Assembly (NCBI RefSeq): GCF_001194135.2
Contig: NC_068986.1
Span: forward strand, 31,439,187 to 31,503,186
Length of the DNA stretch: 64,000 bases
Reading direction: 5' to 3'
From: Octopus bimaculoides
Taxonomy: Eukaryota
Shown: in pieces, positions 5,162-48,186 of the stretch
How the letters are laid out: each line of letters opens with the position of its first letter
How positions within the stretch are numbered: position 1 is the stretch's first letter
Made by a program: the position numbers and the translations under genes
Notes under the pieces: generated by a model
Databases searched by the model: none
What the model saw: only the letters and a program-made list of their open reading frames with translations
Told to the model about the DNA's origin: nothing

Positions 5162-5239
<78 letters not shown>

Positions 5240-5390
5240 GGTTAGTAGAATTGCTTATTATCCAAATCATTACTATAAGATTCATAAAGATGACTTCTGA
5301 AGACATATCATAGTAACATGAATCATTAGCTTCAAACAATAAAATAAAGTAGTAAGCACATTTTTCCTGCTTATGCAATAAAAGTACACA

Positions 5391-5422
<32 letters not shown>

Positions 5423-7398: not shown

Positions 7399-7481
<83 letters not shown>

Positions 7482-13140: not shown

Positions 13141-13194
<54 letters not shown>

Positions 13195-13195
13195 G

Positions 13196-13279
<84 letters not shown>

Positions 13280-14521: not shown

Positions 14522-14563
<42 letters not shown>

Positions 14564-14579
14564 TACACACACACAAATA

Positions 14580-14612
<33 letters not shown>

Positions 14613-14622
14613 NNNNNNNNNN

Positions 14623-14708
<86 letters not shown>

Positions 14709-16105: not shown

Positions 16106-16140
<35 letters not shown>

Positions 16141-16420
16141 GTTATTATTATTATTATTATTGTTATTGTTATTGTTATTGTTATTGTTGTTGTTATTGTT
16201 GTTATTGTTATTATTGTTATTATTATTATTGTTATTGTTATTGTTGTTGTTATTGTTGTTATTGTTATTATTGTTATTATTATTATTGTTATTATTATTA
16301 TTGTTATTATTATTATTGTTATTATTATTATTGTTATTGTTATTATTGTTATTGTTATTATTGTTATTGTTATTATTGTTATTGTTATTATTGTTATTGT
16401 TATTATTGTTATTGTTATTA

Positions 16421-16451
<31 letters not shown>

Positions 16452-18587
16452 CAAAGCAATGAGCTAGCTGAATGGTTAGCACACCAGACAAAATGCTTAG
16501 TGGCATTTCGTCCATCTTTACATTCTAAGTTCAAATTCTGCCAAGGCTGACTTTGCTTTTCATCCTTTCAGTGTCACTAAAATAATAGATAGGAGCACTC
16601 CGTCGGTTACGACGACGAGGGTCCCAGCTGATACGATCAACGGAACAGCCTGCTCGTGAAATGAACGTGCAAGTGACTGAGCAATCCACAGACACATGTA
16701 CCCTTAACGTAGTTCTCGGGGATATTCAGCGTGACACATAGTGTGACAAGGCTAGCCCTTTGAAATACAGGTACTACTCATTTTTGCCAACTGAGTGAAC
16801 TGGAGCAATGTGAAATAAAGTGTCTTGCTTAAGGACATTACGTGTGTTTGGCATCTGGAATGTTCTGCACACTGTACTCCACCAGCTAGATTACATTTTA
16901 TCAGTGGAAAGTCGGTTCTCAAATTCTGTTGAGGGTCATTGGAGGATATCAGTGATGATGACTGAGAGCAATTTGGGTATCATTGAGGTAGTCTGAGAAA
17001 CATCTTCTGAAGGACTTTCAGGTCAGATACTATATATTCAAATATAGTAGGATCCTACATATATGAAACTCTTTTGCTGAACTGCTGAGTTACATGGATG
17101 TAAACATATCAACATCGGTTGTCAAGCAATCGTGGGGGGACAAACATAGACACAAAGACACACTGATATAAATATACACACACACATATACACATACACA
17201 CATACACATGACAGGCTTCTTTCAGTTTCTGTCTACTCAATCTACAAAATCTACTCACAAGGCTTTGGTTGGCCCAAGGCTATAGTAGAAGACACTTACC
17301 CAAGGTGCTATATACACAGTGGGACTGAACCTGGAACCATTTAGTTGGCAAGCAAGCTTCTTACCGCACACACACACATATATATATTTATTTATATAAA
17401 GGCATTACTATACATAAATGCCTCATGCTAAGAGGGGCTCTAAAGTCAAACTACCATAATAAACACATGCTAACTACTTGATGAATTCTTATAAAGATTT
17501 TATCCTATTCTTGAATTATATATGTATATTGGCAATCAAGTTTTGGTACTTTTCAACATAACACTGCCAATAAAGGACACTTTGCAATGCTATTCTTAGA
17601 AATACATTTATAAAAACGTGTGTATGTGTGTGTGTTTGCTATATTATTTCAGTATGGTTATGCTCCGTGTTCCTGTTTTGTAATATCAACAACAAAATAT
17701 AACCTAAGCTATAAAACATGCTTCAGGTTTGGTCAGCATTATGCAAATCCCATAGAAACTACAAGCAGACTTGCATGTGTCACGAAATGCTGCAACTCCT
17801 TCTCTCCCTCCTTTTCTCCCCCCCTCTCTCTCTCTGTTTCTTTTCTCTTTCTTGTTTTAGTATAAAGAACTTTAGCATAATAACAGTCTGTATTTCTTTT
17901 GCTAGCTTTCAAGAAAAGAAAAATAAAAGTCTAAAAGAGATGCTGGTGACACTGTTATGAAACAATGCATTACATACTTTTCAAATCATATAAGTTTTGT
18001 TTAAGAAGTTTAAATTCCTCTGTGATTTGTAATTGAAATTACATAAAAATGAATGGTAAAGAATTCTTTGCAAGCAAAATATAATCAGTGTTAAGGTTAT
18101 CAAAATATATATTAAACTATCTTTATATGTCAATAAATACATACATAAAAATATAAAATGAGTTATTTTTGAATAAAATGAATTTATAGAAATACTCAAG
18201 GCTGTGCGGGTAAGAAGCTTCCTTTTCAACCATGTGGTTTTGGGTTCAGTCCCACCGTATGGCACCCTGGGCAAAAATTTTCTATTATAGCCCCCTGATC
18301 AACCATTGTCTAATAAATAAATTTGGTAGATGGATGCTGTACGTGTGTATATATGTGTATATATATACATATACCCTTTACTCTCTTTTACTCTTTTACT
18401 TGTTTCAGTCATTTGACTGCAGCCATGCTGGAGCACCGCCTTTAGTTGAGCAAATCGACCCCAGGACTTATTCTTTGTAAGCCTAGTACTTATTCTATCG
18501 GTCTCTTTTGCCAAACCAGTAAGTTACGGGGACGTAAACACACCACCAACGGTTGTCAAGCGATGTTGGGGGACAAAGACAGACACA

Positions 18588-18682
<95 letters not shown>

Positions 18683-20053
18683 GCATATATACGACGGGCT
18701 TCATTCAGTTTCCGTCTACCAAATCCACTCACAAGGCTTTGGTCGGCCCAAGGCTATAGTAGAAGACACTTGCCCAAGGTGCCGCGCAGTGGGAATGACC
18801 CTGCAACCATGTGGTTGGTAAGCAAGCTACTTACCACACAGCCACATACACATAATTTATAAAAAGTAAAAGGAGGTAGTCAAAATTTTGAATAATTAGT
18901 TATTCAGCGCTTTCATCTCGTTTCAGAGATTCATAAGCTGAATCACTGAAATGTGATGAAAGCAGTAAATAAATAATTATGTAAAATTCTGACTACCTCC
19001 TTTTTCTTAATATATAAAATCTGCACACTACTTCAAACAATCTACCCACACACACACACACACACCACTTGACAGCCAGTTCGACAAAAAGTAAATACTG
19101 GGTTTGGTTCGTTCAACCAAACCCTTCAAGATTGTGCCCCAGCATGGCTGCAGTCTTATGACTGAAACCAATAAAAAGTAAAGGACAGTGAGTGTTGTAA
19201 GTATGTCAAATTGTTTTTAACTGTTCTTTAGAATTTTCTTTACATTATTCTAGAAAACATGAAAAATTACTGCTGAAAACCAAAGTACCAAGTCCAGCAA
19301 CAGAATGGATTGGGAATGTGTTCTGTTCCAGTGAAACTGATGGCCTTGGCTTGTTAGCTTTGCCTACCATTTCCGTCTTTCAACCATTTTCCATTTCTTA
19401 TATAATGCCATACACTGGTATTGTTGGGGAAAGGATTCCTATAAGCATAACTATACAATCGAATATCAAGAAATGCCTTACTGTAAGTATCCTTTTTGTT
19501 ATATTTTCTTTCTTTTTATTTTTTTTTTTCTTCTGAAAAATACATTTTGTAGATTTGAAACATTTTTCCTACATTGTCAAGGTTTTGTTATTTCATTTAT
19601 TTTATTTATTTTTAGACTGTTAAGGATTTTGTCATCCCTCTTAAACATCTTAGCATTCATCTTTTTATTAGATATTCAACAAATTCCAGCTCTCCTTGAA
19701 GAGACAATAAAAATAGTTTTTCTTTGTTTTTTTTTTTCTCTTTTACTTTATTGACTAAATAATCCTATCATTGTTCTACTTCATATTCTTTACTCGATAA
19801 GCTGAACAATCTCAGCCCCATGGTTTGCAGTTGTCATTGTTATGGATTTTAGATACTCTTTTACTTGTTTCAGTCATTTGACTGTGGCCATGCTGGAGCA
19901 CTGCCTTTAGTCGAGCAAATCAACCCCAGGACTTGTTCTTTGTAAGCCTAGTACTTATTCTATCGGTCTCTTTTGCCGAACCGCTAAGTTACAGGGGCGC
20001 AAAAAACACCACCATCGGCTGTTAAGCGATGTTAGGGGGGGGGGACAAACACA

Positions 20054-20092
<39 letters not shown>

Positions 20093-23000
20093 CACTAAAT
20101 GAGAATGAAGACCAATGAATTACTCCAAACATTTGGTCAGTTCAGCTACAATTATCTTATAAGTCTGCTCAAGTAGTGTTAATTAGAAATACTCAAAAAT
20201 AATAACCAGCAAACTAAATTTAATTTAAATTTTGTGCTGTAGTTGTATTCTACAGCAAAGCAAAGTCATCCAGGGGCCTTGGTTACTCACTCCAAAATGA
20301 AAATGATCAACCCCAGAATGAAAGGGGATCTGACCTCACAGCAGAACAAAAGGGGATCTGACCTCACAGCAGAACAAAAGGGGATCTGACCTCACAGCAG
20401 AACAAATTCTCATGTGCTTGCATCATGATAAAACACCATGAGCTGTTTAAAATTCTCTTTGGCTTAGGGGTAAAGGTTATGACAGGCATGACACATCACC
20501 TGGTTTATCAAGACCCTCTTGGTCCCTTGCTTTCATTTAGCACCAAAGGATCAAGAGCATCTTGATAAACTGGATCTTTGAGTATTTGCTTGGCTACATT
20601 TTCTTTCAGACATTGACAATTTAAATGTTTAGATTGGACATCAGCCTCATCGATCTCACTCGTCTGGAAAAACCTGCAAAGGCCATGAACACTGCTTTAT
20701 GCACAAACTAAACAAGAAAAAAATTAAGATTGATGACAGCAATACTTCAGACCTGTCCTAAACTTGAATTACTTATGTTTCTCACTTTAGCTATCCATAA
20801 AAAAAACTTTCTCAAAGATCAACAATGTTCCTTTGCTAAATGTTTATGTTCCATTCTGTTTATTCCTTTGATAGATAGGGTTACAAGTGAAGGTGTCAAG
20901 TAACTCGGAAAAGACACCAAAAGAAATCAAAGGGCCGGTGTCTTGTCTCTGTAAAGAAGAATATATTACGACCAACATTTACTTAAATGACCTCCCCATT
21001 GGTGTAATTAATGTTACAGTACAGGTAAGCTTGAGTTTTAATTAATTTTTTAGCGGTGGAGAGGTTTGGTAGATAATTAAAAAAAAATTGGGGTTTTTGC
21101 TTTTTGGAGACTTTTCCAATAGATACAAATGATTGTATGGTATGCATACGAGGAGGTGCAGAAAAGTTCCTAACTTTAAGTGTATTGTGAAAGGCCTGGT
21201 TGAAGGCCAAACCTTCCAAAGTTCTTTTACAGGGCTTAGAAAAACTGAAGGACTACTGCAATAAATGTGTGAATCTGAGAGGGGAATATGTTGAATAAAA
21301 TCTTCCTATATTTTCTGTTACCCAAAGCAAGGAACTTAAAGATTTAATTTGTAATCATATCCTAGCCCACAACTTAGATTAACTCCATTACCTGATCCTT
21401 TGGTGTCTTTAGCAGAATGCACTTTACTGTGAACATTCAAACTTGATCCACAGTTGTTTCTCCATGTCCATGTTTTCCTGCAGGTAATCAGACTAGGAAT
21501 TAGCTGTGTCAAATTCACTACTCTGGGAGGATCTACAAAAGATAATAGGCATTGCCCCTACCTGCTGACTAACTTAGGAAACATTGTTTTTATCTGAGGT
21601 TCCTTATTCAAAAGATATGAATAATGTGATATATTTTTGTCTAAACACTTTGTTTACAGGGTAAATCTATTTTGCCTAATAATAGAAGATGTAGTAAAAA
21701 GACTGTTGATTCTCGTTATATTGGAATGATTGATTCCAGCTCTGCTTTCATCAATATGAGGGTAAGTAGTATCAATTTCTTATAATTTGTTGATTTTTTT
21801 TTTTTTCACCACTCACTTCAAAACCAAAAATCAATTTTTTTTTTTCTATTTTTGTAATTTAAATAGAGGATTACTTACTTATTTTTACTATATATCTGGT
21901 AGCAATTTTGATTGAAGAGAGATTTAAAAAAATTCACCTGAGACAAATGAGATTTATGTACAAAATTGATACATTAAAATTATTTAATATACTTTAATGC
22001 GATTAAAATTAAAGAAAAAAAGGAGAAAAAATGCATTCAGATTTCTTGTTTTCCATAAATTTACATGAAATTTTTTAATCTTATTTTATTTTTCATTTCT
22101 TCAGCCAAAAGGTTTCGTACAAGAAATTACTCACTCCGAATACGTCTGCCCTTCAGGTATGCTTATTCATATAACTCATAAAATATCTACTCTTGGTGGA
22201 GTAACTGATAAATTTGATCCCCAATACTTGACTGGACCTTATTTGATTCTGTAATTCCCAAAAGAATTGGAGAATCAAATAAGGTCTAGACAGGTAATCA
22301 TGGGGGCCTATCTTGGCTCTCTGTGGTCTAGATTCAGTGCTGGATTAACCATTAAACAAAATAAGCATTTGCTTAGAGCATCAAAGAAAAGGGGGCACCC
22401 CAGAAATAGTAAATGGTTTATGGCACAAAGGAAATCACTTCAAACTTGTTAAAATAATATTCAAAGTGGTTTATATGATCAGAAATATAATTTCAAAGTG
22501 TTTATGGTGTCATAGTGAGGATCTAATCCAAGACATTGCATTTAAAAAAGTAGAAAATTTTTCAAATATAAATGAAGTGGAAGTAGGCAAAAAAAAAATA
22601 TTATTTTCCCTCTTACTGTTAGTTTTATTTCATTTTGAAAAATGAAAATTTATTTTATGGTTTATTATTGTTTATATTTTCAATTACATATATACGCGAG
22701 CACCAACATCTTTTAAGTGATTAAAGCCTCAATGGGTCTTAATCCAGCCCAGTTTAGACCAACAAGCTGAACCTACTTCTTATAGACCCTGGCTAGAAGG
22801 ATAAAGAGAGGGTATCAAAAATTAGGCCAAAGAGTGAATTATATTCAGCTAACACACATGCTGTATTTCATTAAGTTGTATGTATTAATTCATTGAAAAA
22901 TCATTAACTGAAACAGATTTTTTGTTTGTTTGAATGTTTGTTCATTTAGCATTCATTGTTCTATGCTAGAATGAATTGGACAGGGATGCATTTGTGGCCA

Positions 23001-23162
23001 GATGCTCTTCCTGTTGCCAACATTACTTGTTTTTCAAGCAAAGGATTTATTTATCCCACAGCTCTTTGAAAGTTCAAAGTAACTAGTTGTAATCATCAAT
23101 GAGGAATGTAAACACCATTCACTGTTTTATTGAAGCAAAACCTCGGGATGTTAACTTTCATT

Positions 23163-23248
<86 letters not shown>

Positions 23249-24386
23249 AGTAGGTTTCAGTAGTCATCAGGATAGAATGCTACTGTTTCGGGACCCTCTT
23301 GATAATTCTACAGTTCACTAGCTCCCTTCACTGGTGTGAGACCCCTACCTACTGGATCGACTGACTAGTATTCAATCTTAATTCCTTCAACCCAGGATCA
23401 TCAACACCATTCCAAATGATCCATCCAACAGTTATGCTTGTTCTAGATATATGTATCATCATCATCATCATCAACATCATCGTCTTTTAACGTCCGCTTT
23501 CCATGCTAGCATGGGTTGGACGATTTGATGTATAAATCTGTAATCTGAACAAGGAGCACATATTTTTCTAAGCATATTTATATTTTTTTTAAAAAAAAAG
23601 GTTGTAAAAGATTTATTTTAATTTGTTAAATTAAAATTTTTTTTATTCTTTTTCCCCCCAATTTCAGAGGATCATGGTGGAAATTATGTTAATGTCCTTT
23701 CAACTGAACTACCAAAAGATACAGTCCCTGGAAGTGTGAAAGCAGAAATCAACATGTTTGGTAATAAATTTGGGTATCTTTATACTTTTTTTTCCTTTTT
23801 CAGTTTGTAATTTTCAGAAATGCTATCCAAATATTAATTTGTTTCAACTACACTTATTTAAAATATTGGTAATTATTAACACTTCACTTTCAGCATTAAA
23901 TTATCTTATTGCCATTCTTTGTTTAAAACTTCACAAATTATTTGGTTCAAACTTCACAAAATTAAACAACTTAACCAACAACTTTAACGACATTTTGACG
24001 TGATTTTGTTATATGATTTAATGGCACCTCATATTTTCTGTGCAATTCTAGGTAATATGTTATGGCCTGGGTTATCATCTCTAGAAAATATAGTGAATGA
24101 TCCTATCACAAATGGAGAGGGAAACATCCTGAGCTTGGCTGCTACCATTTACGTCATGGATTTCTTGAATGCTGTTGGAAAAGTTTCTTATGAAATTGAA
24201 ATGAAAGCAATTGAAATAATGGAAAAATGTATGACCATAATTTAATTTCATTCTTTACATTGTAGTTATGATGACAGTTTGATTGTGTTGATGTTTTAAA
24301 TACACATTTTTAAGCTTTAAAAAATGCCTTAGACAACTGGTAGGAGTCTGATAGGGTAAAACATTCGAACACAAGATTCCCATCTG

Positions 24387-33200: not shown

Positions 33201-36200
33201 TTACTGTTTCACTGACTTCAGGTGCTAGACTGTGGCTATGCTGGAGCACCACAAAGTTTTACTTGACCATGTGGTAAGAAGTTTGCTTCCCAACCACATG
33301 GTTCTAGGTTCAGTTCCACTGCATGGCACTTTCGGTGAGTTTCTTAGCCCCAGGCTAACCAAATCCTTGAAAGAAGCCTGTCATATGTATTGGGTCATCC
33401 CATAAATAATGCAGTTTTTTTTAATACTTCTTTTATTTTTCAAAATTAAGATAAACAAAGTTCTTTTTTAATCTAAAATATACTCTCCTTCATTTTCTAC
33501 AATGCTCTTCCATCTTTCTGGTAGACTTGTAAGGCCCTTCTTCCAAAATTCACTTGTCTGTAATGAAAAATACTCCTCCAGTACTGTTCTGACCTCGTCT
33601 ACAGAATTCATGTTTTCTCTGTCCAAACAATTTTGAAGACTGCAGAATAAATGATAATCAGATGAGGCAACGTCCATCTGCATTTTTCTGCTTTTAAAAA
33701 GAAAAAAGGATTTTATCCTTTATATCTATACTGTTCAGTATCTATGCGTTGAATAAAATTTATCTTTCTACTTGTTCTACCATACATTTCAGCGCTTCGA
33801 AAACAAACTTGTTTGTTTACATACGGTGTAAAACAAAATAAATTAATATTTACTGCTTATCTAGTTTTGTGTCTGCTTTAATATTTGTGTTGTTTTAATG
33901 ATCTTTCAGCCAAAACATGCAGAAAGAGTCGGTGTTAAAAAGTATGAAATGACAGAAGACTATGTATATTTATATTTTGATGAGGTAAGTGTAAAACTAC
34001 ACATAGAATTTCTATAATACACATATGTGCTCCACATTATACATAGATTCATTCAACTATATATAGATTTATTCTGCTGCACGTAGTTTTACTACAGTAC
34101 CCATAGATTGACTCTACTTCACATAACCTTAATTGCTCTATCTACCATACTGCAGTCAATTTGAATAGCTGGGCCCTCTTTCTCCCATCCATTCTCCTCA
34201 TCCAGCAACCACTCATAGTAGCACTTCTGTGCCTCTTTCATTCCATAACACACTTCTCTCCACACAGTATCTCAATTCTCTCCAGTACACTGCTTTGCAA
34301 TCCCAGAATGCATCATGCTGTACTCTTTCACCACAACTTTCTCTCACCCTTTCTCCCTGTTTCTGTTGTACCTGTATTTCAAAAGGACCAGCCTTGTCAC
34401 ACTCTGTGTCACGCTGAATCTCCCCGAGAACTACATTAAGGGTACACGTGTCTGTGGAGTGCTCAGCCACTTGCATGTTAATTTCACGAGCAGGCTGTTC
34501 CATTGATCGGATCAACTGGAACCCTCAATGTTGTAACCGACGGAGTGCCAACAATTCACATCCACTTGCCTCCATTCTAGCATCTTCAATATCTTGTTGA
34601 TAGCAGCAGCTCTAAAGTTTTTCTCCAGACAAGAAAAATGAGGATTTTCAGAGATGATGCATTTGATTCTTATTTAACTTCTACATCTGAGAAAAGAAAA
34701 TTTAAAAATTAGAAAGATTGGACAATTGCTTGTTAGCGGTCAGAATGATTTCACACATGATTACACGTTTTCACCAATGGTTGGTATGCTGTTATTTGTC
34801 CACTCACCATGATTCACTACATGCAATTATCATTATTGTTATTACTGCTATCAATAACTTTGAGATGTTTTAGTCTTTGTCACTTAGCATGATAGGTGTT
34901 AGGATTACAAAAAAGAAAAACACACCAGTTACCAAAGGGAAGACTTCATGGTAGTCTTTCTGGAATTGGTGTTGGCTGTGTGCATTAGGAGATAAGCAAC
35001 ACATGCTTTTGGTTTTAGTTTATCATTATAAAAACTGCATGAGAAGTGAATACGTCATAGATATTAATAATATCAATAACAGATAACATATATAATGATT
35101 AATTAAAGCAAACAATATGGTTTCCTTAGCTTGTTTACAGGAAACAAAAAGTATTGAAATGAACAGTGTCTTGGAAAGTCAAGTATATAAAAAGAGGCTG
35201 AATGTAAGGTGGGAACAGAGAGACAGACAAACAGACAACTGGATAGCGAGGCAGGAAGGGAGAGAGATTTACAGCAGTACTGATGTTCTATTTATGCGAT
35301 TGTTACTAATTATTTTGTTTCTTTATTTGTAAAGATGAATAAAACTGCAAAATGTATTGAAATCGAGATTGAACAAGTGTTGGCATTGAGCAGTCTTCCA
35401 GCAGGAGTGGTCGTCTATGATTATTATGATAGAGGTCAGTATCTTTCAGTACGTACATACATACATACATACATATATATATACAATCATAGTGGAGGTG
35501 CAATGGCCCAGTGGTTAGGGCAGCAGACTCACTGCACTTTTGATTATGTACTTGTCTATATGTTTTTTAATCATACCTAATGCGCCTATTATTATAGGGT
35601 TTTATTATTATTATAGGATTGTTTTTTTTTTGTTTTTTGGGGGGATTTTTAAGCCCTAAATCTACTGTTATTTCTTTTATGAAAATCCATTGATTATGTC
35701 CAATAGTCTAAAACAAGAAAAGACACTAATATAACCCATAATTTCTTGTGTACCTGTCATGTGATTCATTTAATTGTCATTTTCCTTTTTCTTTTATCTT
35801 CTAGATGTGATTGGTCATACCTTGTATGGACTGAAAACAACATGTGGAACCAAAGAAGAACTACCAGTAGTTTCTCAAGAGACATATGAAAATTCTATGA
35901 CACAACAAAGACAGCCTATTGGACTACCCCCTGCACTACAAAAGTTGTTAAAGCTAAAATCTAAAAACGTAAACCATATGAATGCTGCAGCAGGTATGTT
36001 CCTAAACTGGAAACCTAACAATTGTAGATCATTTATTGTCACTTAATAGTGGTGTCTTGGAGTAAAGGAAAAGTTTCAAATGAACAGAGTCAGCAATCTG
36101 GTTTTTATTGTCACTTCACTTATTTTTCTATAATCATAAGGGGGGGTGGTATGAATATTACAACTTCTCTTGTCCCCTTCCTTAAAATCTCATATTCCAT

Positions 36201-39200: not shown

Positions 39201-42200
39201 TGTGCCTAGAGTAGAAAAGATTATTCTAGAGATCCTTAAAATTAAAATGCTCAGTAATTAGTGTTGTCAGTTTAATTTCTGCAGTGCATCATAACTATAA
39301 ATGGATTAAAATTTGACAAATATTTTCATCTTTGTCATCATCGTTGCTGTCATTATTGATGGTGGCACCAAAGAAAAAAAAAAGTTTAATAGCGTTTCTT
39401 CTGGCCTTACATTCTGAGTTCAAATTCCACTGAGGTTGACTTTGCCTTTCATCCTTTCGGGAGATCAATAAAATGAGCGTCACTTGAGCAATGGATTCAA
39501 TGTAATTGACAAGACTCCTCCCACATATCTTACTAGTACCCTTATGCCTATAGTAGAAAAGTTTATCAATTCCATCTGGTGGATTGGCTGAATAAATGTT
39601 TTTCGGTATTTGTTCCAGCTCTTTACATCCCGAGTTCAATTCCTTAGAAGGCCTATTTTGTTGTTCATCTCTCTGGAGTCAATGAAATAGACTTGTTGTT
39701 GGCACTCCGTTGCTTACAACGTCGAGAGTTCCAGTTGATCCGATCAACGGAACAGCCTGCTCGTGAAATTAACGTGCAAGTGGCTGAGCACTCCACAGAC
39801 ACGTGTACCCTTAACATAGTTCTCGGGGATATTCAGCGTGACACAGTGTGACAAGGCTGACCCATTGAATTACAGGCACAACAGAAACAGGAAGAAAGAG
39901 TGAGAGAAAGTTGGGGCGAAAGAGTACAGCAGGGTTCGCCACCACCCCTGCTGGAGCCTCATGGAGCCTCATGGAGCTTTAGGTGTTTTCGCTCAATAAA
40001 CACTCTCAACGCCCGGTCTGGGAATCAAAACTGTGATCCTATGACCGTGAGTCCGCTGCCCTAACCACTGGGCCATTGCACCTCCTCAATGAAATAGTCA
40101 AGTATTGGGATTGATGATATCAACAAACTCTCTTCTCTCAAAACTACTGACCTTATGTCTAAATTAAAAGCAATTATAATTCCATCTAATATATGTCCCA
40201 GGCTCTTCAAAATCAAATAACTATGAGCAGTACTGGTCAGGTTCTTCATAGTTTCAAGACTATTTTTACCTTTTGTTTGTTTGCTCAAACAAAGACATTT
40301 TACAAAATAAAATCTTACATATAGTAAACTTTAGTTTGAATTTTCAGAAACAGCCAGCTCTATCACAGAAAATCAGCAGAGTGAATCAGCTATTGTACCA
40401 AATGGCACCCAAGTCATTAACACAGCCAATAGTACCTTCAACGCAACTTCTCCACGTAGAAAAACTGTTGCTGAAATAAGTATCACACTGAAAACGACCA
40501 GCGTCAGTTTTCTCACAGAGTATGCTGAGCCAATACCAGTAACTACAGCGTCCAGCACAAATGTAAGCGCTGAAGCAAGCAAAGAACCTATTCTGGTCAA
40601 TTTATCAAGAAATCATAAAAAAAAGGTAAGCTTCAGTGCTTTTCAAATTATATCAAATTATCGTCATCATCATCATCATCATTATATACTAAATGATGAT
40701 GATGATATTGGAGATGATAAAGAGAACTTGTATTAATTGATAGCTATAATACATATCGGAGGCGCAATAGCCCAGTGGTTAGGGCAGCGGACTCACGGTC
40801 ATAGGATCGCGGTTTCAATTCCCAGACCGGGCATTGTGAGTGTTTATTGAGCGAAAACACCTAAAGCTCCACGAGGCTCCGGCAGGGGATGGTGGCAAAC
40901 CCTGCTGTACTCTTCCACCACAACTTTCTCTCACTCTTACTTCCTGTTTCTGTTGTGCCTGCAATTCAAAGGGACCAGCCTTGTCACACTGTGTCATGCT
41001 GAATATCCCCGAGAACTTCGTTAAGGGTACACGTGTCTGTGGAGTGCTCAGCCACTTGCACATTAATTTCACAAGCAGGCTGTTCAACTGAAACCCTCGA
41101 CGTCGTAAGCGACAGAGTGCCAATAATAATAACATAATACATATCACATAATATGCCTGCAAGCCATGTAATGAGCCTCTACACCAGTAATTATTTACCT
41201 GTGCAGTACCATCTCACTGGGTGTATTGTGAGTTCTAAAGTCGATGGATGCTATGGTGGTTCTGTGTGCTTAAAGGGATCATGATGAAATAGTCAACCCT
41301 TTAGCATTCAGATTACTCCATCAAATGTAATGTTTTTTTATTCATTGTTTTGAATTAAGCATGCATTATCTTGTGGCTTCAACATTTTGATGATGTAATT
41401 GTTTATTATTTGACATTGTAGTGTAAATGTGAGAGGTCAGACCTAACTGGTTTGAACATAAAACAAGTAGAATATTTGCACCAGATATGACCTGCTTGAA
41501 TACTGAAATGTTAAACCAGGTACAAGATTTATTTTAAATGGTCCAATATAATTTCCATAAAAAGTTAACCTAAGAGACACTAATCCAATGCAAATATCTA
41601 AAGGGAGGTACATGGGATTCTATGAGAAATAATGGATAAATGACTTTGCTAAATTAGCTTCTGTTTAATTAAAACAATAGGTTTTGTGATTTTCTTATAA
41701 CTCAGTAACCCACTTCCATTTACTGAATGATATTTGCAAGTTGCCATTTGGTGGAAGGGGTTTATTGAGAATCACTGAGCTAGATGGTTGCTCAACCCAT
41801 TATGAATAGATAATGAATTATATTATCAATTATATCCTACCATCATAAAAAGGTAAGACACAATGGATAATGTTGTCCTAGATAATCAGTGCTCTTCCAA
41901 AGGTTGGATGGTCAAAGCTGCAACACTTTTGGTCATAGGTCTGCTCAGTCAGGGCTTACTTAAGGCTAAAGTAATACAGCTATGAATCATGTGACAACAG
42001 AGTGAAACAACTGTATGGTCAACTACATAAATTAAGTAATTCAGATTTATGGAAAAACGAAAGATGAAAGGTATAGGAACAACAACAAGTAAGTGTATTA
42101 GTTTGTTGCTCAGGAAAAAAGGAAAAGTCCTTTACGTTTCAAGCCTATGCTCTTCAACAGAAAGGAATAAGAGGAAATAGAGAGAGAATGAAAAGAAAAT

Positions 42201-45200
42201 GTGTAGAAAAACGCTAAATTAAAACTAATTTTGGTGGCTCTTTATTTGACAGAATTGTCCAGTATGCTGGGATAATGTACCAAAAGATTATCACAAGTTA
42301 TTCTGCAATGCAGTAGAAGGTAAATAAAAATCTTTCATTTTGTATCTATTAAGTTCAATTTTTGACTATAAAACTATTGGGTTGTCCGGAAAGTTTGTGC
42401 AGATTTATAGTAGCTTACCTTTCGACTTATTTTAGAACATGGTTGAATCCATAAAATAGGATTTGACTACACTTCCATTTAGAGCACAGTTTAAGCTATT
42501 TTTTCTTGGAAGAAGGTTTATGTTCCTATAACCTGTGTTAATTCTGTAACCTTTTAAAATGGAAGATAAGAAAGTTCATTTTCGGGACTTGATGCTTTTC
42601 TTTTTTCGTAAAGGGAAAAACGCCTCACAAGCAACCAAAGAAATATGCGCAGTTTACGGTGATGTTTCTTTATCTGAAAGAACTGTATGAAAGTGGTTCA
42701 CAAGGTTCCAAGCTGGAGATTGTAGCCTTATTGATAAAGAGCGATCAAGCAGACCATCCACTACAGATGATGACCAAAAGAAGTCATTAATTAAGAATAA
42801 CCCACATTGCAAAACCCGACAATTGGCAGAAAGTCTCAACCTATCAAAATCCATCGTTCATGAGCACCTGGTAAAGCTTGGGTACACAAATCGCTACAAT
42901 GTTTGGGTATCACATGAGTTGAGTGAGAAGAACCTTTTGGATTGCATTTCCATCTGTGATTCACTTTATAAACAGAATGAAAACGTGCCTTTTTTTTTTT
43001 TTAAAGCAAATTGTGACAGGTGATGAGAAACGGATTATCTACTGAAATGTTCAGAGAAAGCGATCCTGGAGTAAGCGACATGAGCCACTCTTAGCCACCC
43101 CAAAAGCGGGTCTTCACCCTAAAAAAGTTTGCTTTGTGTCTGGTGGGAGTGGAAAGGAATTCTGTACTATGAGCTTCTCCCAAGTAACCAGACAATTAAC
43201 TCTGAGAAATACTGTACACAAAGGCCACCTTTCATTTGTCCACTCGTGTGAGTGTCAGTAGAGGAAAAGTAGTCACATTAGTTATGAACATCAACAATTT
43301 GGCTTTGAAAGCAAATACACCAGGAGAGTGTTCTACAGATTGAAACCTCGTACAGCTTACCAATTTTCAGTCCAACTGTCCAACCCATGCCAGCATGGAA
43401 AACAGACATTAAATGATGATTGATTAATTACTTATAGTTTTACCAGCTGAGGTGAATATGTTTCACTGTGAAGGTCTATTAAAGTCCAAACATCTGTTTT
43501 CACTAACTGGCATTGGCTTAAAGACCAAATCCATGCAAGTCTTCATCGTCTATAGTATTTCTATTTGTTGATCTTGTTAAAGTTATTTTATTTTCTTGCA
43601 GGTTTTAGATTTTAAATACACCTACTAAAGGAGAATTTTTTTCCTCTCTGCTAATAAGAGTTCAACTCCTATTTATGAAAAAAAAAAAAGAAAATTCCAT
43701 TTTATATATTTATAGTTTATAAAATATCTTCTGGAAAGAACAAAGAACATTTAATACGGGTTATGGCAGATCTTCGGCCAGTGAAGAAATTACAAATTAA
43801 AAAATTTGTTGTCCCCAAAATGGACAAATCTTGTGAATGTGCCTGTATAAAGGAAAAAGGTAAGGCTCACAATGTATTGACTTTTATTTCATTAACCTAC
43901 CCCCTACCCAACCAACTTTCAACACTGTAAATAGAAATTAATTCAGTAAGCAAACAAAGGAAAATTAATTTTCCTGTTAGCAAATGAAGAAATGAAGCAC
44001 AGTGGTAGTTCTTGTAGGTATATTTGACTTAATGATGAAACGCATGGCTTAGTGATTAGAATGTTGGACTCCAGGACGTAAGATTCTGGTTTTGATCCCT
44101 GGACCAGGTAACGTTGTGTTCCTCATCAAAATACTTCATTTCATATTGCTCCAGTCCACTCAGCTGCTAAAAAAATTAGCAATCCTGTGTCAGCCCAGGG
44201 TCCCATACATATATATATACATTGGAGAAACTGGGAAACCAACCTTGTGCTCCTTACAAACTAATCATATTTGACTTAATACTTGTAGTGCATTGTTTTC
44301 TTTGAAAGCTTTATTCGGTAACTATGGCTTTTGATGATGTATGCAATGTGAAGTATGAACATTCCTATTTACAATACTAGTATACTTACACTATTTCAGC
44401 ATATTTGTGGGACATTTATTTGAATTTATCTATTCTATTTCTCCCATAAAAATGTGAGCTTTATTTAGAAATACCATAGCATCTCTACCAGTTAAATACC
44501 CCTCAACCAGTTTATTTACATGACTTTCAATAAGCTCACAAATAGTATAGTTAATGTATTTAATTCCATTCTAAGGTTTGAACATCTGACCATGTAGCCA
44601 TTAGTCTAGCAACTAAAGCTTACAGCAGCAACTGTGATAAATAACCCAGTTCATGAGCTTATGGCTTTTGATTTAAAATCAAATAGGTCAGATGATGACA
44701 GGTAAAGACATTCAAGACTTGACTTACCTGTTTTCCTTTTAAATAGTAGCAAATTAGTCTCAAATTGTACCTTGCATTTTGTGATGGATCAAGCAACCAC
44801 AGAAAAGAAAAAAAAAAAAAACCCTCTTTCGTTTAGTTAAGATGCTTGTATTTATTGTAGAGTAATTTAATTATTAAATAGACAAGAGGGGTTTGGGGAA
44901 ACTACTGCTTCCATTAGCAAAAGGATTTCTTTACTCTGAAAATCAGAATGTTGTTGACATATGGCAGTAAAATTTACGTATTAAATTATGCGACTGAATT
45001 GCAAAAGTCTCCATCAACAAGCTTGAAATGTAATGCCTTTGGGACATTCTTCAGACGAGATGGCAAGACAATCACCTGTCTTGACAAATCTCTTACAGAT
45101 AGCCATCTCAATTCTTGATGGCTGTCTATAAAATATCTTTCTATGTGTAAATGTTAACTCCAAGATCTTTTGAAATTTGATAGTCTAAATACATTATTAC

Positions 45201-45438
45201 CATCTCTACTTCTCTTTCCACCCTCACCTCCGTATTTTTAGTGATGTCAAATTAACTCCTCACTTAAAATTGCCTTTTGCGTTTTATTTCAGGACGCCGA
45301 GTCTTAATGCGAATGAAAGCTGGGCCAAAATTCAAAGACATGGGTCCTGTTCGTCTTGACAAACATGTTGTTATATTTCAACTTAAATCTGTTGTAGAAA
45401 GACACATGCGTAGACTGGCAAAGTCTTGCAAGAGATGA
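1452..45438 (+). CDS. Alpha-2-macroglobulin/TEP-family protein lacking the thioester, with C-terminal mucin-like linker and NTR/C345C-like domain (5'-partial, 29 exons in window)
   Basis: Exons: 1452-1564, 3206-3379, 4886-5098, 5712-5943, 6048-6220, 6825-6971, 8323-8434, 9022-9089, 15754-15859, 15969-16104, 19254-19482, 20875-21024, 21660-21761, 22105-22156, 23668-23760, 24052-24228, 25190-25509, 26201-26360, 28957-29144, 30455-30673, 31409-31524, 33087-33171, 33910-33984, 35335-35434, 35805-35993, 40348-40625, 42253-42319, 43716-43859, 45293-45438. All are GT-AG with matching phases and total 4364 nt, open to TGA at 45436-45438. A2M hallmarks appear in the correct order: [72 protein letters not shown]. 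Confidence 0.93.
1685..2800 (-). mobile_element. Three tandem copies of tRNA-headed SINE family D (1685-1905, 2293-2505, 2560-2795)
   Basis: Reverse complement of GAGCTGGCAGAATCGTTAGC...GAGTTCAAATTC...GCCTTTCATCCTTTCGGGGTCGATAAAATAAGTACCAG (A/B boxes plus conserved core). Confidence 0.8.
3206..3379 (+). CDS. TEP exon (MG4)
   Basis: TTCAG|[18 protein letters not shown]...[11 protein letters not shown]...FVLQ|GTAAC. Confidence 0.9.
3588..3976 (+). mobile_element. tRNA-headed SINE family B
   Basis: GGAGGTGCAATGGCCCAGTGGTTAGG...GTTTCGATTCCC head; GGAGTGCCAACAAC tail. Confidence 0.88.
4886..5098 (+). CDS. TEP exon (MG4/MG5)
   Basis: TTCAG|ARSINGTF...[14 protein letters not shown]...NLYYL|GTGAG. 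Confidence 0.9.
5712..5943 (+). CDS. TEP exon (MG5 plus basic insertion)
   Basis: TCCAG|[12 protein letters not shown]...[15 protein letters not shown]|GTATG (phase 1). Confidence 0.88.
6048..6220 (+). CDS. TEP exon (MG5)
   Basis: TACAG|..[36 protein letters not shown]|GTAAG; matches A2M 'P...llvY....GEvvaD...f.V..Cf.N.V'. Confidence 0.93.
6825..6971 (+). CDS. TEP exon (MG6a)
   Basis: CTAG|[36 protein letters not shown]...TEQQ|GTAAG. Confidence 0.9.
8323..8434 (+). CDS. TEP exon (linker)
   Basis: TGTAG|[37 protein letters not shown]|GTATG. Confidence 0.85.
9022..9089 (+). CDS. TEP exon carrying RKKR processing site
   Basis: TACAG|[23 protein letters not shown]|GTAAG. Confidence 0.88.
10455..10950. 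repeat. Higher-order AT-rich satellite, ~15 units of TATGTATGCACATACATATAGA(TA)n
   Basis: Units counted by eye; variable (TA)n spacer. Confidence 0.9.
11662..11817. mobile_element. Small TIR element (MITE)
   Basis: CAGAGGCATAGC ... GCTATGCCACTG (11/12 inverted match). Confidence 0.5.
13330..14430 (-). mobile_element. Tc1/mariner-superfamily DD37D (maT-type) transposon remnant, internally deleted
   Basis: HTH-like [24 protein letters not shown] (14071-14334) and catalytic C-half WQQ(V)[19 protein letters not shown] with 37 residues between the second-D position and the final D. Confidence 0.85.
14845..15170 (+). mobile_element. SINE family B2 (different core, same 3' half as B)
   Basis: tRNA-like head, GTGTCCTTGAGCAAGACACTTTA core, then the B-type tail; an antisense copy lies at ~16595-16850. 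Confidence 0.72.
15754..15859 (+). CDS. TEP exon (start of bait-like region)
   Basis: TTCAG|[35 protein letters not shown]|GTAAG. Confidence 0.88.
15969..16104 (+). CDS. TEP exon (bait-like region to FxETWLW)
   Basis: TTCAG|[46 protein letters not shown]|GTTGTT. Confidence 0.9.
16105..16451. repeat. (ATT/GTT)n trinucleotide microsatellite, ~347 bp
   Basis: Directly visible; begins at a splice donor. Confidence 0.97.
18377..18846 (-). mobile_element. tRNA-headed SINE family A with internal (CA)n
   Basis: Reverse complement of GTGGCTGTGTGGTAAG...GGGTCATTCCCACTGCG...GCGGTGCTCCAGCATGGCTGCAGTCAAATGACTGAAACAAGTAAAAGAG. Confidence 0.88.
19254..19482 (+). CDS. TEP exon (MG6b/MG7)
   Basis: TCTAG|..[25 protein letters not shown]...[19 protein letters not shown]...KKCLT|GTAAG. 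Confidence 0.93.
20321..20404. repeat. Perfect 28-bp x3 minisatellite
   Basis: AAAGGGGATCTGACCTCACAGCAGAACA x3. Confidence 0.95.
20875..21024 (+). CDS. TEP exon (MG7)
   Basis: GATAG|IGLQVKVSS...CLCKEEY...IGVINVTVQ|GTAAG. Confidence 0.87.
21660..21761 (+). CDS. TEP exon (MG7)
   Basis: TACAG|[34 protein letters not shown]|GTAAG. Confidence 0.85.
22105..22156 (+). CDS. TEP exon (CUB start)
   Basis: TTCAG|[17 protein letters not shown]|GTATG (A2M 'PEG...e.t.n...Cp'). Confidence 0.87.
22335..22752. mobile_element. TIR element (MITE)
   Basis: CAGTGCTGGATTAA ... TTAATCCAGCCC ends. Confidence 0.5.
23668..23760 (+). CDS. TEP exon (CUB)
   Basis: TTCAG|[31 protein letters not shown]|GTAAT. Confidence 0.92.
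24052..24228 (+). CDS. TEP exon homologous to the thioester exon (motif degenerate)
   Basis: TCTAG|[39 protein letters not shown]...IMEK|GTATG. Confidence 0.93.
25190..25509 (+). CDS. TEP exon (TED)
   Basis: AACAG|[19 protein letters not shown]...LTAFVLRIL...[12 protein letters not shown]...[17 protein letters not shown]|GTATG. Confidence 0.95.
26201..26360 (+). CDS. TEP exon (TED)
   Basis: TTTAG|[11 protein letters not shown]...[14 protein letters not shown]...RRSKVL|GTAAT. Confidence 0.92.
27354..27581 (+). mobile_element. piggyBac-like non-autonomous element family E
   Basis: Ends (TT)(A/G)ACCCTTTAGCATT ... AATGCTAAA(G/A)GGTTAA; copies at 36946-37707 (interrupted), 41295-41515(-), 47765-47945(-) and 56254-56456. 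Confidence 0.75.
27973..28203. mobile_element. piggyBac-like non-autonomous element family F
   Basis: TTAACCCTCTTGATACCA ... TGGTAACAAAAGAGTTAA (TTAA ends plus imperfect TIR). Confidence 0.65.
28957..29144 (+). CDS. TEP exon (TED)
   Basis: TACAG|GEETFW...[10 protein letters not shown]...[17 protein letters not shown]|GT. Confidence 0.95.
29502..30198. other. Assembly gap (N)
   Basis: Other gaps: 14613-14622, 24420-24719, 31656-31749, 37451-37460, 58293-58471. Four of the six have a (TA)n tract on at least one side. Exon chains stay continuous across all of them. Confidence 0.99.
30455..30673 (+). CDS. TEP exon (TED end/CUB)
   Basis: TTCAG|[13 protein letters not shown]...[10 protein letters not shown]|GTAAA. 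Confidence 0.94.
30973..31204 (-). mobile_element. Mariner-derived MITE (same TIR as 42375 element)
   Basis: TIRs TATTGGGTTGTCTGGAAAGTTCGTGCC / GGCACGAACTTTCCGGACAACCCAATA; the interior encodes [26 protein letters not shown] on -. Confidence 0.9.
31409..31524 (+). CDS. TEP exon (MG8)
   Basis: TTAAG|TSLKYNVL...FHLRVGV...[13 protein letters not shown]|GTTAG. Confidence 0.9.
32082..32365 (-). mobile_element. Family C retroposon copy
   Basis: (ATC)n end, GTTTAACGTCCGCTTTCCATGCTAGCATGGG, tandem internal modules; close to the copies at 59205 and 62285. Confidence 0.8.
32426..32794 (+). mobile_element. Helentron-associated (HINE/DINE-1-like) element
   Basis: 5' ATTACCTCTGCCTTAGCAAAGGCGGAGGT palindrome, (GTTT)n, 3' GGCGGAGGT subTIR and GCGCTC-TCT-GAGTGC hairpin; partial copies at 62783-63058(+) and 47498-47645(-). 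Confidence 0.72.
33087..33171 (+). CDS. TEP exon (MG8)
   Basis: AATAG|[28 protein letters not shown]|GTGAG (A2M 'YTG...SNMAIVDVKMVSGF.P'). Confidence 0.92.
33388..33870 (-). mobile_element. Mariner remnant (C-terminal fragment, different TIR)
   Basis: [10 protein letters not shown] (YSPDLAPSDY-type motif)...[18 protein letters not shown]; TIR-like TATTGGGTCATCCCATAAATAATGC; right boundary approximate. Confidence 0.8.
33910..33984 (+). CDS. TEP exon (MG8)
   Basis: TTCAG|[25 protein letters not shown]|GTAAG. Confidence 0.92.
34305..34553 (+). mobile_element. SINE family B, 5'-truncated
   Basis: Body and tail match 3745-3970. Confidence 0.82.
35335..35434 (+). CDS. TEP exon (MG8 end)
   Basis: TAAAG|[33 protein letters not shown]|GTCAG. 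Confidence 0.92.
35805..35993 (+). CDS. TEP exon (post-MG8 linker)
   Basis: TCTAG|[29 protein letters not shown]...MNAAA|GTATG. Confidence 0.85.
37070..37512 (+). mobile_element. SINE family A, full length, inserted into a TTAA MITE
   Basis: GGCGCAGGAGTGGCTGTATGG A box, GGTTCAGTCCC B box, (AAAGAGT)n tail; other copies at 17069-17370(-), 19854-20090(-), 28488-28915(-), 49955-50305(+), 51338-51715(+), 55432-55647(-) and 61450-61815(+). Confidence 0.9.
38113..38382 (-). mobile_element. Mariner-derived MITE; related copy at 21147-21320 (+)
   Basis: Imperfect TIRs AGGGGGTGTTGAAAAGTTCTCGGCTTT / AAAGCTGGGAACTTTTCAGCACCCTCT; the 21147 copy reads [20 protein letters not shown]. Confidence 0.78.
39005..39228 (+). 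mobile_element. SINE family D, full length
   Basis: A box AGCTGGCAGAATCATTAGC, B box GAGTTCAAATTC, core CTTTCATCCTTTCGGGGTCGATAAA; further copies at 4270-4470, 16460-16590, 26765-26890, 31750-32030 and 39380-39570. Confidence 0.82.
39693..40085 (-). mobile_element. SINE family B, full length with TSD
   Basis: TSD TCAATGAAATAG at 39679-39690 and 40086-40097. Confidence 0.92.
40348..40625 (+). CDS. TEP exon, Ser/Thr-rich mucin-like segment
   Basis: TTCAG|[36 protein letters not shown]...[28 protein letters not shown]|GTAAG; open for 278 nt with phases fitting both neighbours; not in the ORF track. Confidence 0.8.
40758..41133 (+). mobile_element. SINE family B, full length with TSD
   Basis: TSD ATAATACATATC at 40746-40757 and 41134-41145. 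Confidence 0.92.
42253..42319 (+). CDS. TEP exon, NTR/C345C-like domain part 1
   Basis: GACAG|[22 protein letters not shown]|GTAAA. Confidence 0.85.
42375..43222 (+). mobile_element. Mariner transposon remnant (5' TIR plus disrupted N-terminal 2/3 of transposase)
   Basis: TIR TATTGGGTTGTCCGGAAAGT; MEDKKVHFR.., WVSHEL, IVTGDEK, LHPKK.. with stops and frameshifts. Confidence 0.9.
43716..43859 (+). CDS. TEP exon, NTR/C345C-like domain part 2
   Basis: TATAG|[48 protein letters not shown]|GTAAG. Confidence 0.83.
45293..45438 (+). CDS. TEP last coding exon, NTR/C345C-like domain part 3
   Basis: TTCAG|[48 protein letters not shown]. Confidence 0.83.
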
Positions 45439-48180: not shown

Positions 48181-48186
48181 TTTATT
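48181..48186 (-). terminator. Candidate polyadenylation signal of PPase gene
   Basis: TTTATT on + (AATAAA on -) about 170 nt downstream of the stop codon. Confidence 0.4.

Follow-up and report, generated by a model that had tools for sequence, protein, structure and literature searches.

Three small exons probably encode a divergent, strongly basic NTR-like module at the C-terminal end of an octopus A2M-type macroglobulin

To which gene do three small exons spread over 42253-45438 of an Octopus bimaculoides contig belong, and what kind of domain is the very basic peptide that they encode? The window is the whole stretch of DNA analysed here, that is 64,000 nucleotides of contig NC_068986.1 (assembly GCF_001194135.2; positions 31,439,187 to 31,503,186), and all octopus coordinates below are counted within it. 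Very probably, they close the coding part of a large immune gene of the A2M group, within the thioester-protein superfamily, and the module that they encode represents a divergent form of the NTR/TIMP-like OB fold.

The module exons had AG/GT splice borders, with a polypyrimidine tract and AG ahead of each of them and the reading frame kept across the joins. The donors were GTAAAT for exon A and GTAAGG for exon B, while exon C ran into a TGA at 45436-45438. The features of this segment are:

42253..42319, + strand: module exon A (gene exon 27), phase 0 to 1, 22 residues, with Cys 1-3 of the NTR-like domain
42550..43260, + strand: Mariner (Mos1-type) transposase remnant in the intron between exons A and B, non-coding and with visible stop codons (Pfam HTH_48, E = 2e-20)
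43716..43859, + strand: module exon B (gene exon 28), phase 1 to 1, 48 residues, with the invariant CxC pair and an extra, species-specific Cys
45293..45438, + strand: module exon C (last coding exon, 29), phase 1, 48 residues and TGA, with the last Cys

Once spliced, the three exons measured 357 nt (118 codons and a stop) and encoded a peptide beginning with NCPVCWDNV and ending with KSCKR, with seven cysteines, 30 K+R against 11 D+E, and a pI of 10.04. The sequence-only reading had described a very basic peptide with 28 K/R in its last ~96 residues and 7 Cys, and these counts were reproduced exactly. Its proposal that the three exons are coding was borne out by the splice borders, the open frame, the conservation and a profile match. 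It had also remarked that the exons were missing from the ORF track, which is plausible: the stop-to-stop ORFs of exons B and C reached 55 and 53 aa, respectively, below the usual threshold of 60 aa, and exon A gave none. A profile built from 10 non-octopod relatives aligned with the spliced octopus module from end to end (99 bits) and, run against 2069 six-frame segments of the window, picked only exons A, B and C, in order (E = 7.5e-6, 2e-13 and 8.9e-4, respectively), a match that far exceeds chance. Downstream of exon C, polyA-like signals were located at 45972, 46387, 46404 and 46632. A search of the window for additional module copies and for another macroglobulin gene found neither.

The module exons came last (27-29) in a reading frame of 29 exons on the + strand (1452-45438; 1453 aa), in which all exons had AG/GT borders and a single open frame closed at the module stop. 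This frame was colinear (tblastn) with residues ~315-1757 of the 'murinoglobulin-1-like' protein of Argonauta hians (P0008 = GAB1607259.1, 1757 aa), and its initial splice model had an identity of 81.4% over 1440 aligned positions; the N-terminal ~314 residues are encoded upstream of the window. The exons preceding the module are:

1452..23760, + strand: upstream body (MG4 to CUB region), 15 exons, colinear with P0008 by tblastn and listed in the next four lines
1452-1564, 3206-3379, 4886-5098, 5712-5943, 6048-6220, + strand: body exons 1-5
6825-6971, 8323-8434, 9022-9089, + strand: body exons 6-8, with RKKR at 9027-9038
15754-15859, 15969-16104, 19254-19482, 20875-21024, + strand: body exons 9-12
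21660-21761, 22105-22156, 23668-23760, + strand: body exons 13-15
24052-24228, 25190-25509, 26201-26360, 28957-29144, 30455-30673, 31409-31524, + strand: thioester-domain and first receptor-binding-domain exons
33087-33171, 33910-33984, 35335-35434, + strand: receptor-binding (MG8) domain, three exons, the last ending ..VVVYDYYDR
35805..35993, + strand: linker exon Y (gene exon 25), 86% identical to P0008 by tblastn
40348..40625, + strand: linker exon X (gene exon 26), whose splice pair ranked best in this interval and whose acceptor is orthologous to that of Argonauta

On the body, Pfam matched MG4, A2M_BRD, A2M, TED and A2M_recep, with TED_complement at E = 4.8e-60 in the thioester-domain exons and A2M_recep at E = 7.4e-16 in the MG8 exons, whereas the search of the whole 1453-aa protein returned no ANATO, LDLa, Kazal or NTR match. 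The domain order was MG domains, a bait-region domain with the RKKR site, A2M, a thioester-type domain, the receptor-binding/MG8 domain, the linker and the module. An exon hidden in the N gap at 29502-30198 was also considered, and was ruled out by the colinearity with P0008. The thioester motif was replaced by NGEGN (24111-24125), so that the thioester cannot form; the same NGEGN was present in Argonauta, and GCGEQ was intact in the Haliotis and Batillaria relatives. Some superfamily members are known to have lost this motif, so that its absence does not exclude membership of the A2M group.

Compared with solved structures, the body scored 359 bits with A2ML1, 351 with A2M, 264 with CD109, 179 with TEP1, 125 with C3 and 76 with C5, and its alignments to all these relatives stopped at the end of MG8. 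The protein body is thus, as far as sequence similarity tells, of the A2M type and closest to A2ML1/A2M. It shared with A2M, A2ML1, PZP and murinoglobulin the order of MG domains, bait region, A2M, TED and receptor-binding domain, but differed from this group in the ~270 residues, linker and NTR-like module together, that extend beyond the receptor-binding domain, and in the NGEGN of both octopods. Two other long proteins of the A2M group carry additional domains, MCR possessing LDLa and a C-terminal transmembrane helix and CPAMD8 a C-terminal Kazal domain (PMC7016707, PMC9363628), whereas the octopus protein had no LDLa or Kazal match and ended in the basic KSCKR, with no hydrophobic stretch.

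The linker between MG8 and the module comprised ~150 residues, partly Ser/Thr-rich and with glycosylation sequons. Exon Y contained KTTCGTK (35834-35854), a motif shared across the family that includes one conserved Cys and was also found in P0009-P0012, P0014, P0016 and P0020, and its donor at 35994 agreed with the end of the Argonauta exon. Exon X was Ser/Thr-rich, with N-glycosylation sequons and no Cys, ended with HKKK, and had no Pfam match; a 33-aa block within it (40449-40547) was identical in the Argonauta protein, with 16 of its 99 nt differing, all synonymously. A first linker splice model (35805-35968 and 40335-40625) was displaced by the present one, because the donor of the latter scored 9.8 against 2.9 and its sites were orthologous in the Argonauta locus.

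The distribution of the module was further inspected across other species. The family was recovered by an exhaustive phmmer search of representative proteins with the module, which returned 14 proteins; the module was at the C-terminal end in 13 of them, and the remaining match (P0019) was an unrelated repeat protein. A word-indexed homologue search found nothing with the 118-aa peptide and only 3 proteins with the family profile. The species represented included gastropods (Haliotis, Batillaria, Plakobranchus), a bivalve (Tegillarca) and a cricket (Gryllus), the bivalve and insect members being known from partial proteins, and NCBI names the orthologues macroglobulin or murinoglobulin. The module followed the receptor-binding domain wherever enough upstream sequence existed: it formed the final ~120-130 residues of the full-length relatives P0008 and P0011, and Logan contigs of other species showed an uninterrupted ORF from MG8 through the linker into the module. 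In the 12 aligned modules, C2, P3, C5, C18, Y24, C62, C64 and the last Cys were invariant, and all 12 were basic (pI 8.8-10.3, net charge +4 to +21). The Argonauta locus possessed module exons of equal length (67, 144 and 146 nt):

Argonauta locus L001, 86204-86270: module exon A
Argonauta locus L001, 86820-86963: module exon B
Argonauta locus L001, 87326-87471: module exon C

Between octopus and Argonauta, the module showed a dN of 0.118, a dS of 1.28 and an omega of 0.09, rates that indicate purifying selection.

As the octopus peptide has an odd number of cysteines, the sequence-only reading had suggested that one of them may be free for dimerisation or conjugation. The extra residue was C66 (TGT at 43844-43846), at a position where Argonauta has Ser (TCA), and all 11 other aligned family members possessed six Cys; the seventh Cys is therefore most simply a substitution private to the octopus sequence, and not part of the domain design. 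The cysteine counts would be compatible with a free thiol that serves covalent dimerisation or conjugation in octopus only: 26 in the part of the protein encoded in the window against 25 in the same part of the Argonauta protein, whose complete sequence has an even number (34), so that one octopus Cys could be unpaired. Inter-subunit disulfides are, moreover, known in vertebrate A2M. Such a role is nevertheless unlikely, as C66 may reflect neutral change, polymorphism or an erroneous base call (the assembly is a draft with many gaps), and dimerisation through a free thiol would not be a conserved feature, since C66 is private and the closest orthologue has Ser.

Whether the module is an NTR domain was addressed through its cysteines, Pfam and a predicted structure. 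The signature that had been read from the octopus sequence, CxxC..C..CxC..C, was recovered as six conserved Cys in the order C-x2-C ... C ... C-x-C ... C, invariant across the 12 aligned members, octopus having one more. With PF01759, the outcome was divided: the octopus 118-aa peptide had no match at E<=10 (gathering cut-off 21.9 bits), but three relatives matched, namely P0020 with 24.0 bits (E = 3.5e-5), above the curated cut-off, P0009 with 19.5 and P0014 with 16.6, and PF01759 was the sole Pfam family matched by more than one module-family member. Searches of PDB sequences with the module (phmmer) and with the family profile (hmmsearch) gave chance-level matches only (CFTR, Ku) and no solved NTR, and hhalign of the family against the human C3 C345C, taken from a C3 sequence 100% identical to 2a74_C, gave a probability of 0.09.

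The AF2 model based on the family alignment (12 sequences) reached a pLDDT of 86.4 and a pTM of 0.79, whereas the single-sequence model was unusable (pLDDT 39). The predicted elements were a short strand, a helix, four strands, the last two of them separated by a short helix, a fifth strand and a long C-terminal helix, which would make a five-stranded barrel flanked by N- and C-terminal helices. Among the top ~30 Foldseek matches of this model in the PDB, nearly all were NTR-superfamily domains, including C5, C4 gamma, C3b, CVF, the PCOLCE1 NTR (1uap), agrin NtA, TIMP-1 and hookworm ES-2. Query-normalised TM-scores ranged from 0.36 to 0.58 (about 0.45-0.58 for C345C, PCOLCE and NtA), and the best E-value was 2.2e-3, none going down to 1e-3. 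An NTR/TIMP-like OB fold is therefore predicted with good confidence from the 12-sequence alignment, in agreement with the fold expected from the cysteine pattern, and by analogy with other NTRs the disulfides would pair C1-C4, C2-C5 and C3-C6, which would correspond to C2-C62, C5-C64 and C18-C115 in residue numbers.

The module resembles several known members of this fold, each in part. With the C345C domains of C3, C4 and C5, its top structural matches, it shared the C-terminal position after MG8 in a thioester-superfamily protein and the predicted OB barrel with flanking helices. It was, however, shorter (118 vs ~150 aa), lacked their extra disulfide loop while keeping the full CxxC/CxC six-Cys set, and was carried on a ~150-aa glycosylated linker where C345C has a short anchor, and its host was A2M-type, without an anaphylatoxin domain. 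The PCOLCE, sFRP and netrin NTRs (PCOLCE1 being fifth in the Foldseek ranking) have the same cysteine spacing, and the module is strongly basic like the heparin-binding NTRs, but upstream of it lies a macroglobulin, without CUB, Frizzled-CRD or laminin-type domains. Of the likeness to SFRP, netrin and PCOLCE proposed earlier, the NTR-like pattern and the predicted fold thus stood, whereas the free-standing context did not. TIMP and agrin NtA are of the same fold class, as far as predicted, and both were among the Foldseek matches. In TIMP, the first Cys of the CxC is the mature N-terminus and its free alpha-amino group serves for zinc, whereas the octopus module begins with N-C-P-x-C after about 1630 residues, at the C-terminus of a ~1750-aa protein, and no conserved cleavage site ahead of it was found in the family alignment.

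These likenesses bear on what the gene is. If the module were the C345C of a true orthologue of complement C3/C4/C5, the gene would encode a complement component. The C345C domains of C5, C4 and C3 at the head of the Foldseek ranking, the C-terminal position after MG8 as in C3, the absence of the thioester as in C5 and the presence of the basic RKKR site would all agree with this. We nonetheless consider it quite improbable. ANATO (PF01821) was not matched, and the flanking exons 15754-15859 and 15969-16104 are separated by only ~110 nt, which hold no six-Cys domain; the body was far closer to A2ML1/A2M than to C3 or C5; sequence similarity to the human C3 C345C was undetectable by hhalign; and the names given to the orthologues by NCBI point to macroglobulins.

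A separate small downstream gene, encoding a secreted SFRP/netrin/PCOLCE-like or TIMP-like protein, would account for the cysteine pattern and basic charge, similar to those of sFRP and PCOLCE NTRs, and for several short database matches (150-270 aa), but it is contradicted by the finding that these short matches are fragments starting inside the receptor-binding domain (Pfam A2M_recep), by P0008 and P0011, which are full-length with the module last, by the exon phases, which tie the module to the macroglobulin exons with no stop, by the lack of a start codon with signal peptide, or of a Frizzled CRD, CUB or laminin exon, ahead of it, and, for the TIMP type, by the requirement for a free N-terminal Cys in a domain that is internal in octopus. 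Equally remote is a tail of pseudo-exons (decayed or chance frames) behind a functional protein ending at the receptor-binding domain: vertebrate A2M, CD109 and insect TEP1 do end shortly after MG8, and the first module intron harbours a transposon remnant, but this is contradicted by conservation, namely the low omega at that dS with equal exon lengths in Argonauta, the six Cys invariant across molluscs and an insect, the phase 1 end and good donor of exon 35335-35434, where read-through enters a microsatellite, and the continuous ORF in the Logan contigs.

Taken as the C-terminal part of an A2M-group protein, the module would have consequences for the classification of thioester proteins. 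The complement group is defined by anaphylatoxin and C345C/NTR domains, and the A2M group by having neither (PMC7016707; bioRxiv 10.1101/2025.10.23.684198). The octopus protein agrees with this definition of the A2M group in lacking ANATO, but departs from it in its NTR-like domain. In the literature searched, no description of an NTR domain in A2M-group proteins was found, which is absence of evidence only. It is conceivable, and proposed here tentatively, that a protostome clade of A2M-group proteins has, beyond the receptor-binding domain, a glycosylated tether bearing a hidden NTR of strongly cationic character; such a clade would span the gastropod relatives with intact GCGEQ, a bivalve and an insect, the latter two known from partial proteins.

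If so, the NTR/C345C module would not be an innovation confined to complement C3/C4/C5: it would either have been present in the common ancestor of A2M and C3 and lost in vertebrate A2M, CD109 and insect TEPs, or have been acquired twice. The domain-based definition of both TEP groups would change, the module would bear on which came first, the C-terminal NTR or the divergence of C3 and A2M, and the origin of C3 could be approached in a new way. The iTEPs and CD109 are 200-350 aa shorter than BgA2M, in which no additional domain was found (PMC7016707), and the module would explain this extra length of mollusc A2M, to which no domain has been assigned (PMC7016707).

The function of the module may be considered by analogy with its structural relatives. 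The C345C domain mediates partner binding in C3b/C5b, and the NTRs of PCOLCE and sFRP bind heparin. By the same analogy, the octopus module may bind heparin, and a cationic NTR-like domain on a flexible glycosylated tether might act as a non-covalent docking module, with polyanionic surfaces (sulfated glycans, matrix, microbial envelopes) or a partner protein as candidate targets. Such docking may matter more in the octopus macroglobulin, because this protein cannot attach covalently, and would suggest surface targeting of a thioester-less macroglobulin without covalent attachment.

Concerning annotation, standard domain models such as those of Pfam mostly miss the module, and gene models of this kind readily lose their final three to five small exons.

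The three exons of the basic C-terminal module were confirmed at the coordinates proposed by the sequence-only reading, together with their splice borders, in-frame join and terminal TGA:

42253-42319, forward strand: module exon A, preceded by ...ctctttatttgacag and followed directly by gtaaat
43716-43859, forward strand: module exon B, preceded by ...tttatatatttatag and followed directly by gtaagg
45293-45438, forward strand: module exon C, preceded by ...tgcgttttatttcag and closed by the terminal TGA

Spliced together, they comprised 357 nt and encoded, in frame, 118 residues plus stop. The very basic, seven-cysteine character of the peptide was reproduced, with 30 K+R versus 11 D+E overall, K or R at 28 of the final 96 positions, and a pI of 10.04 compared to 5.7 for the rest of the window protein. 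A profile built from ten non-octopod modules gave the spliced peptide an end-to-end score of 99 bits and, of the window's 2069 six-frame segments, matched the three module exons only. Exon lengths (67, 144 and 146 nt) were the same in Argonauta, and the comparison with its module gave dN = 0.118, dS = 1.28 and omega = 0.09 (Nei-Gojobori). The three exons are genuine and evolve under strong purifying selection.

A free-standing SFRP/netrin-type context is wrong, as the module forms the last exons of a macroglobulin gene. Macroglobulin-type exons (e.g. one encoding ..VVVYDYYDR) were present on the module strand all the way upstream, based on the ORF listing and six-frame reading, and residues 314-1757 of the Argonauta hians protein GAB1607259.1 (P0008) were colinear with the window (tblastn). 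With splice sites placed by hand, 29 exons (1452-45438) formed a single open frame with AG/GT borders throughout and a product of 1453 aa, the ~314 N-terminal residues of the host protein being encoded upstream of the window. The initial splice model shared 81.4% identity with P0008 over 1440 aligned positions. The module exons are thus exons 27-29 of the gene. Two exons of the linker between MG8 (the receptor-binding domain) and the module were also delimited:

35805-35993, forward strand: linker exon, splice sites orthologous to the Argonauta locus (L001)
40348-40625, forward strand: linker exon, splice sites orthologous to the Argonauta locus (L001)

The remaining window exons had counterparts in L001 in the same order, with 73-91% nucleotide identity. 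The window DNA was eukaryotic (~34% G+C, introns, microsatellites, SINE-like repeats and assembly gaps). Its six N runs (14613-14622, 24420-24719, 29502-30198, 31656-31749, 37451-37460 and 58293-58471), which indicate a draft assembly, avoid all 29 exons, the first five being intronic and 58293-58471 lying downstream of the gene. Given the colinearity with the Argonauta protein, none of them conceals an exon. A trinucleotide repeat of ~350 nt (16105-16450) begins directly at the donor of exon 15969-16104.

The 1453-aa product possessed the Pfam domains MG4, A2M_BRD, A2M, TED_complement and A2M_recep, with no Pfam match to ANATO, LDLa, Kazal or NTR. Among solved structures, human A2ML1 (359 bits) and A2M (351 bits) resembled its body most, followed by CD109 (264), mosquito TEP1 (179), C3 (125) and C5 (76), all alignments stopping where MG8 ends, near residue 1180-1187. 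At the position of the C3 anaphylatoxin, the flanking exons are separated by ~110 nt that contain no cysteine-rich insert. The GCGEQ thioester motif, intact in the Haliotis and Batillaria relatives, is replaced by NGEGN at 24111-24125 (exon 24052-24228), as in Argonauta; the octopod paralog can therefore form no thioester and bind no target covalently. A 68-nt exon (9022-9089) encodes a furin-type RKKR at 9027-9038 (RRKR in Argonauta), and the equivalent position in Haliotis has no basic site. Two-chain processing may be a trait of the octopod lineage alone.

The 118-aa peptide alone had no match in Pfam, PDB sequences or a word-indexed protein search, and an exhaustive HMMER search against 1.84 billion representatives returned 14 matches at E<=1e-3. 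The best was P0008 (cluster name 'murinoglobulin-1-like isoform X1 [Argonauta hians]'), whose last 118 of 1757 residues were 77% identical to the full peptide. Twelve others also carried the module at the C-terminal end, after the receptor-binding domain wherever the protein had enough upstream sequence. These carriers were A2M-like proteins of Haliotis (1745 aa), Batillaria, Plakobranchus and Tegillarca, 'Murinoglobulin-1' from Gryllus crickets, and unnamed fragments. One further match (P0019) was excluded as an unrelated repeat protein. The thioester-domain exons as query retrieved only distant relatives (~30% identity), namely CD109-like and C3 proteins with Pfam TED and receptor-binding domains. 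Two Logan contigs from other species, L002 (SRR27896756, 1699 nt) and L003 (ERR6349741, 1066 nt), contained an uninterrupted ORF that connects the end of the receptor-binding domain, via the linker, to the module, a stretch that spans six exons in octopods. They are probably transcript-derived and, if so, provide indirect RNA support for the architecture.

Eight positions (C2, P3, C5, C18, Y24, C62, C64 and the last Cys) were invariant in 12 aligned family members, the cysteines forming the canonical CxxC..C..CxC..C pattern, and all 12 modules were basic (pI 8.8-10.3). When modules were scanned singly, PF01759 (NTR) was the only Pfam family matched by more than one member, with 24.0 bits for the Tegillarca-type module (curated cut-off 21.9; E = 3.5e-5), 19.5 for Batillaria and 16.6 for a JGI fragment. 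AlphaFold2 reached a pLDDT of 39 without alignment and of 86.4 (pTM 0.79) with the 12-sequence alignment. The predicted fold opens with a short strand and a helix, continues with four strands, the third and fourth of which are separated by a short helix, and closes with a fifth strand and a long C-terminal helix. In Foldseek searches against PDB, almost all of the first ~30 places were NTR-superfamily domains, including C5 (6rqj_A; E = 2.2e-3, TMq 0.54), C4 gamma chain, C3b, cobra venom factor, the isolated PCOLCE1 NTR (1uap), agrin NtA, TIMP-1 and hookworm ES-2. As E-values never reached 1e-3 and query-normalised TM-scores ranged from 0.36 (TIMP-1) to 0.58, the match is one of fold, to a divergent member; comparisons with solved NTRs by sequence were negative. 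The NTR-like reading thus held for fold and family, but the window module itself, like that of Argonauta, had no PF01759 score. On the cysteine pattern, the Pfam matches in relatives and the fold search taken together, the module is accepted as a predicted divergent NTR-superfamily domain.

The seventh cysteine, previously proposed as free for dimerisation or conjugation, is indeed present (C66, within CECAC; TGT at 43844-43846), but Argonauta has CNCTS with the serine codon TCA and all other aligned family members have six cysteines each, which weakens this idea. The window-encoded part contains 26 cysteines and the same part of P0008 25 (34 in whole P0008), so one unpaired cysteine is possible in the window species. 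C66 is a private change, not a feature of the domain, and could also reflect polymorphism or an erroneous base call in the gapped draft assembly.

Directly after MG8, the linker carries KTTCGTK(E/A)E(L/I)P with a single cysteine (35834-35854), conserved across octopods, gastropods and bivalves and weaker in the cricket. In A2M, a C-terminal cysteine closes the receptor-binding domain, and by analogy the cysteine of this motif is probably its equivalent, closing the same disulfide. The following ~130 residues, up to the module, are Ser/Thr-rich with N-glycosylation sequons and poorly conserved, except for a 33-residue block (40449-40547, exon 40348-40625) with 100% protein identity to Argonauta and 16 of 99 nt different, all synonymous, which looks like a constrained peptide.

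The domain set of the host protein is that of secreted macroglobulins, its N-terminus, with any signal peptide, lying outside the window. A long, probably glycosylated tether carries its conserved cationic domain of predicted NTR fold, and the module may dock the macroglobulin non-covalently to polyanionic surfaces or a partner protein. Analogues would be the C345C domains, whose partners are factor B (for C3b) and C6/C7 (for C5b), and the NTRs of sFRPs, which bind heparin. The PCOLCE NTR, a further analogue, is also heparin-binding (PMC2871463). A TIMP-like protease-inhibitor role is unlikely because the module has no free N-terminal cysteine.

Anaphylatoxin and C345C/netrin domains set the complement group apart from the A2M group (PMC7016707; bioRxiv 10.1101/2025.10.23.684198), whereas the window protein combines an A2M-type body with an NTR-fold end. 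Snail iTEPs and CD109 are 200-350 aa shorter than BgA2M, with no extra domain explaining the difference (PMC7016707). A literature search of partial coverage turned up no report of A2M-group proteins with an NTR domain. Public databases already hold the family proteins as automatic predictions; the possible novelty lies in the recognition of the domain as NTR-like and in its misfit with the standard two-group scheme.

Downstream of the gene, polyA-like signals at 45972, 46387, 46404 and 46632 could mark the transcript end, and 46000-64000 showed only repeats and SINE-like elements, with no gene-like sequence seen on either strand. The minus strand has further mariner/Tc1-like remnants, not confirmed by Pfam, at 33471-33719 and 13452-14349, and the intron between exons A and B contains a Mos1/mariner transposase remnant with stop codons (42550-43260, forward strand; Pfam HTH_48, E = 2e-20).
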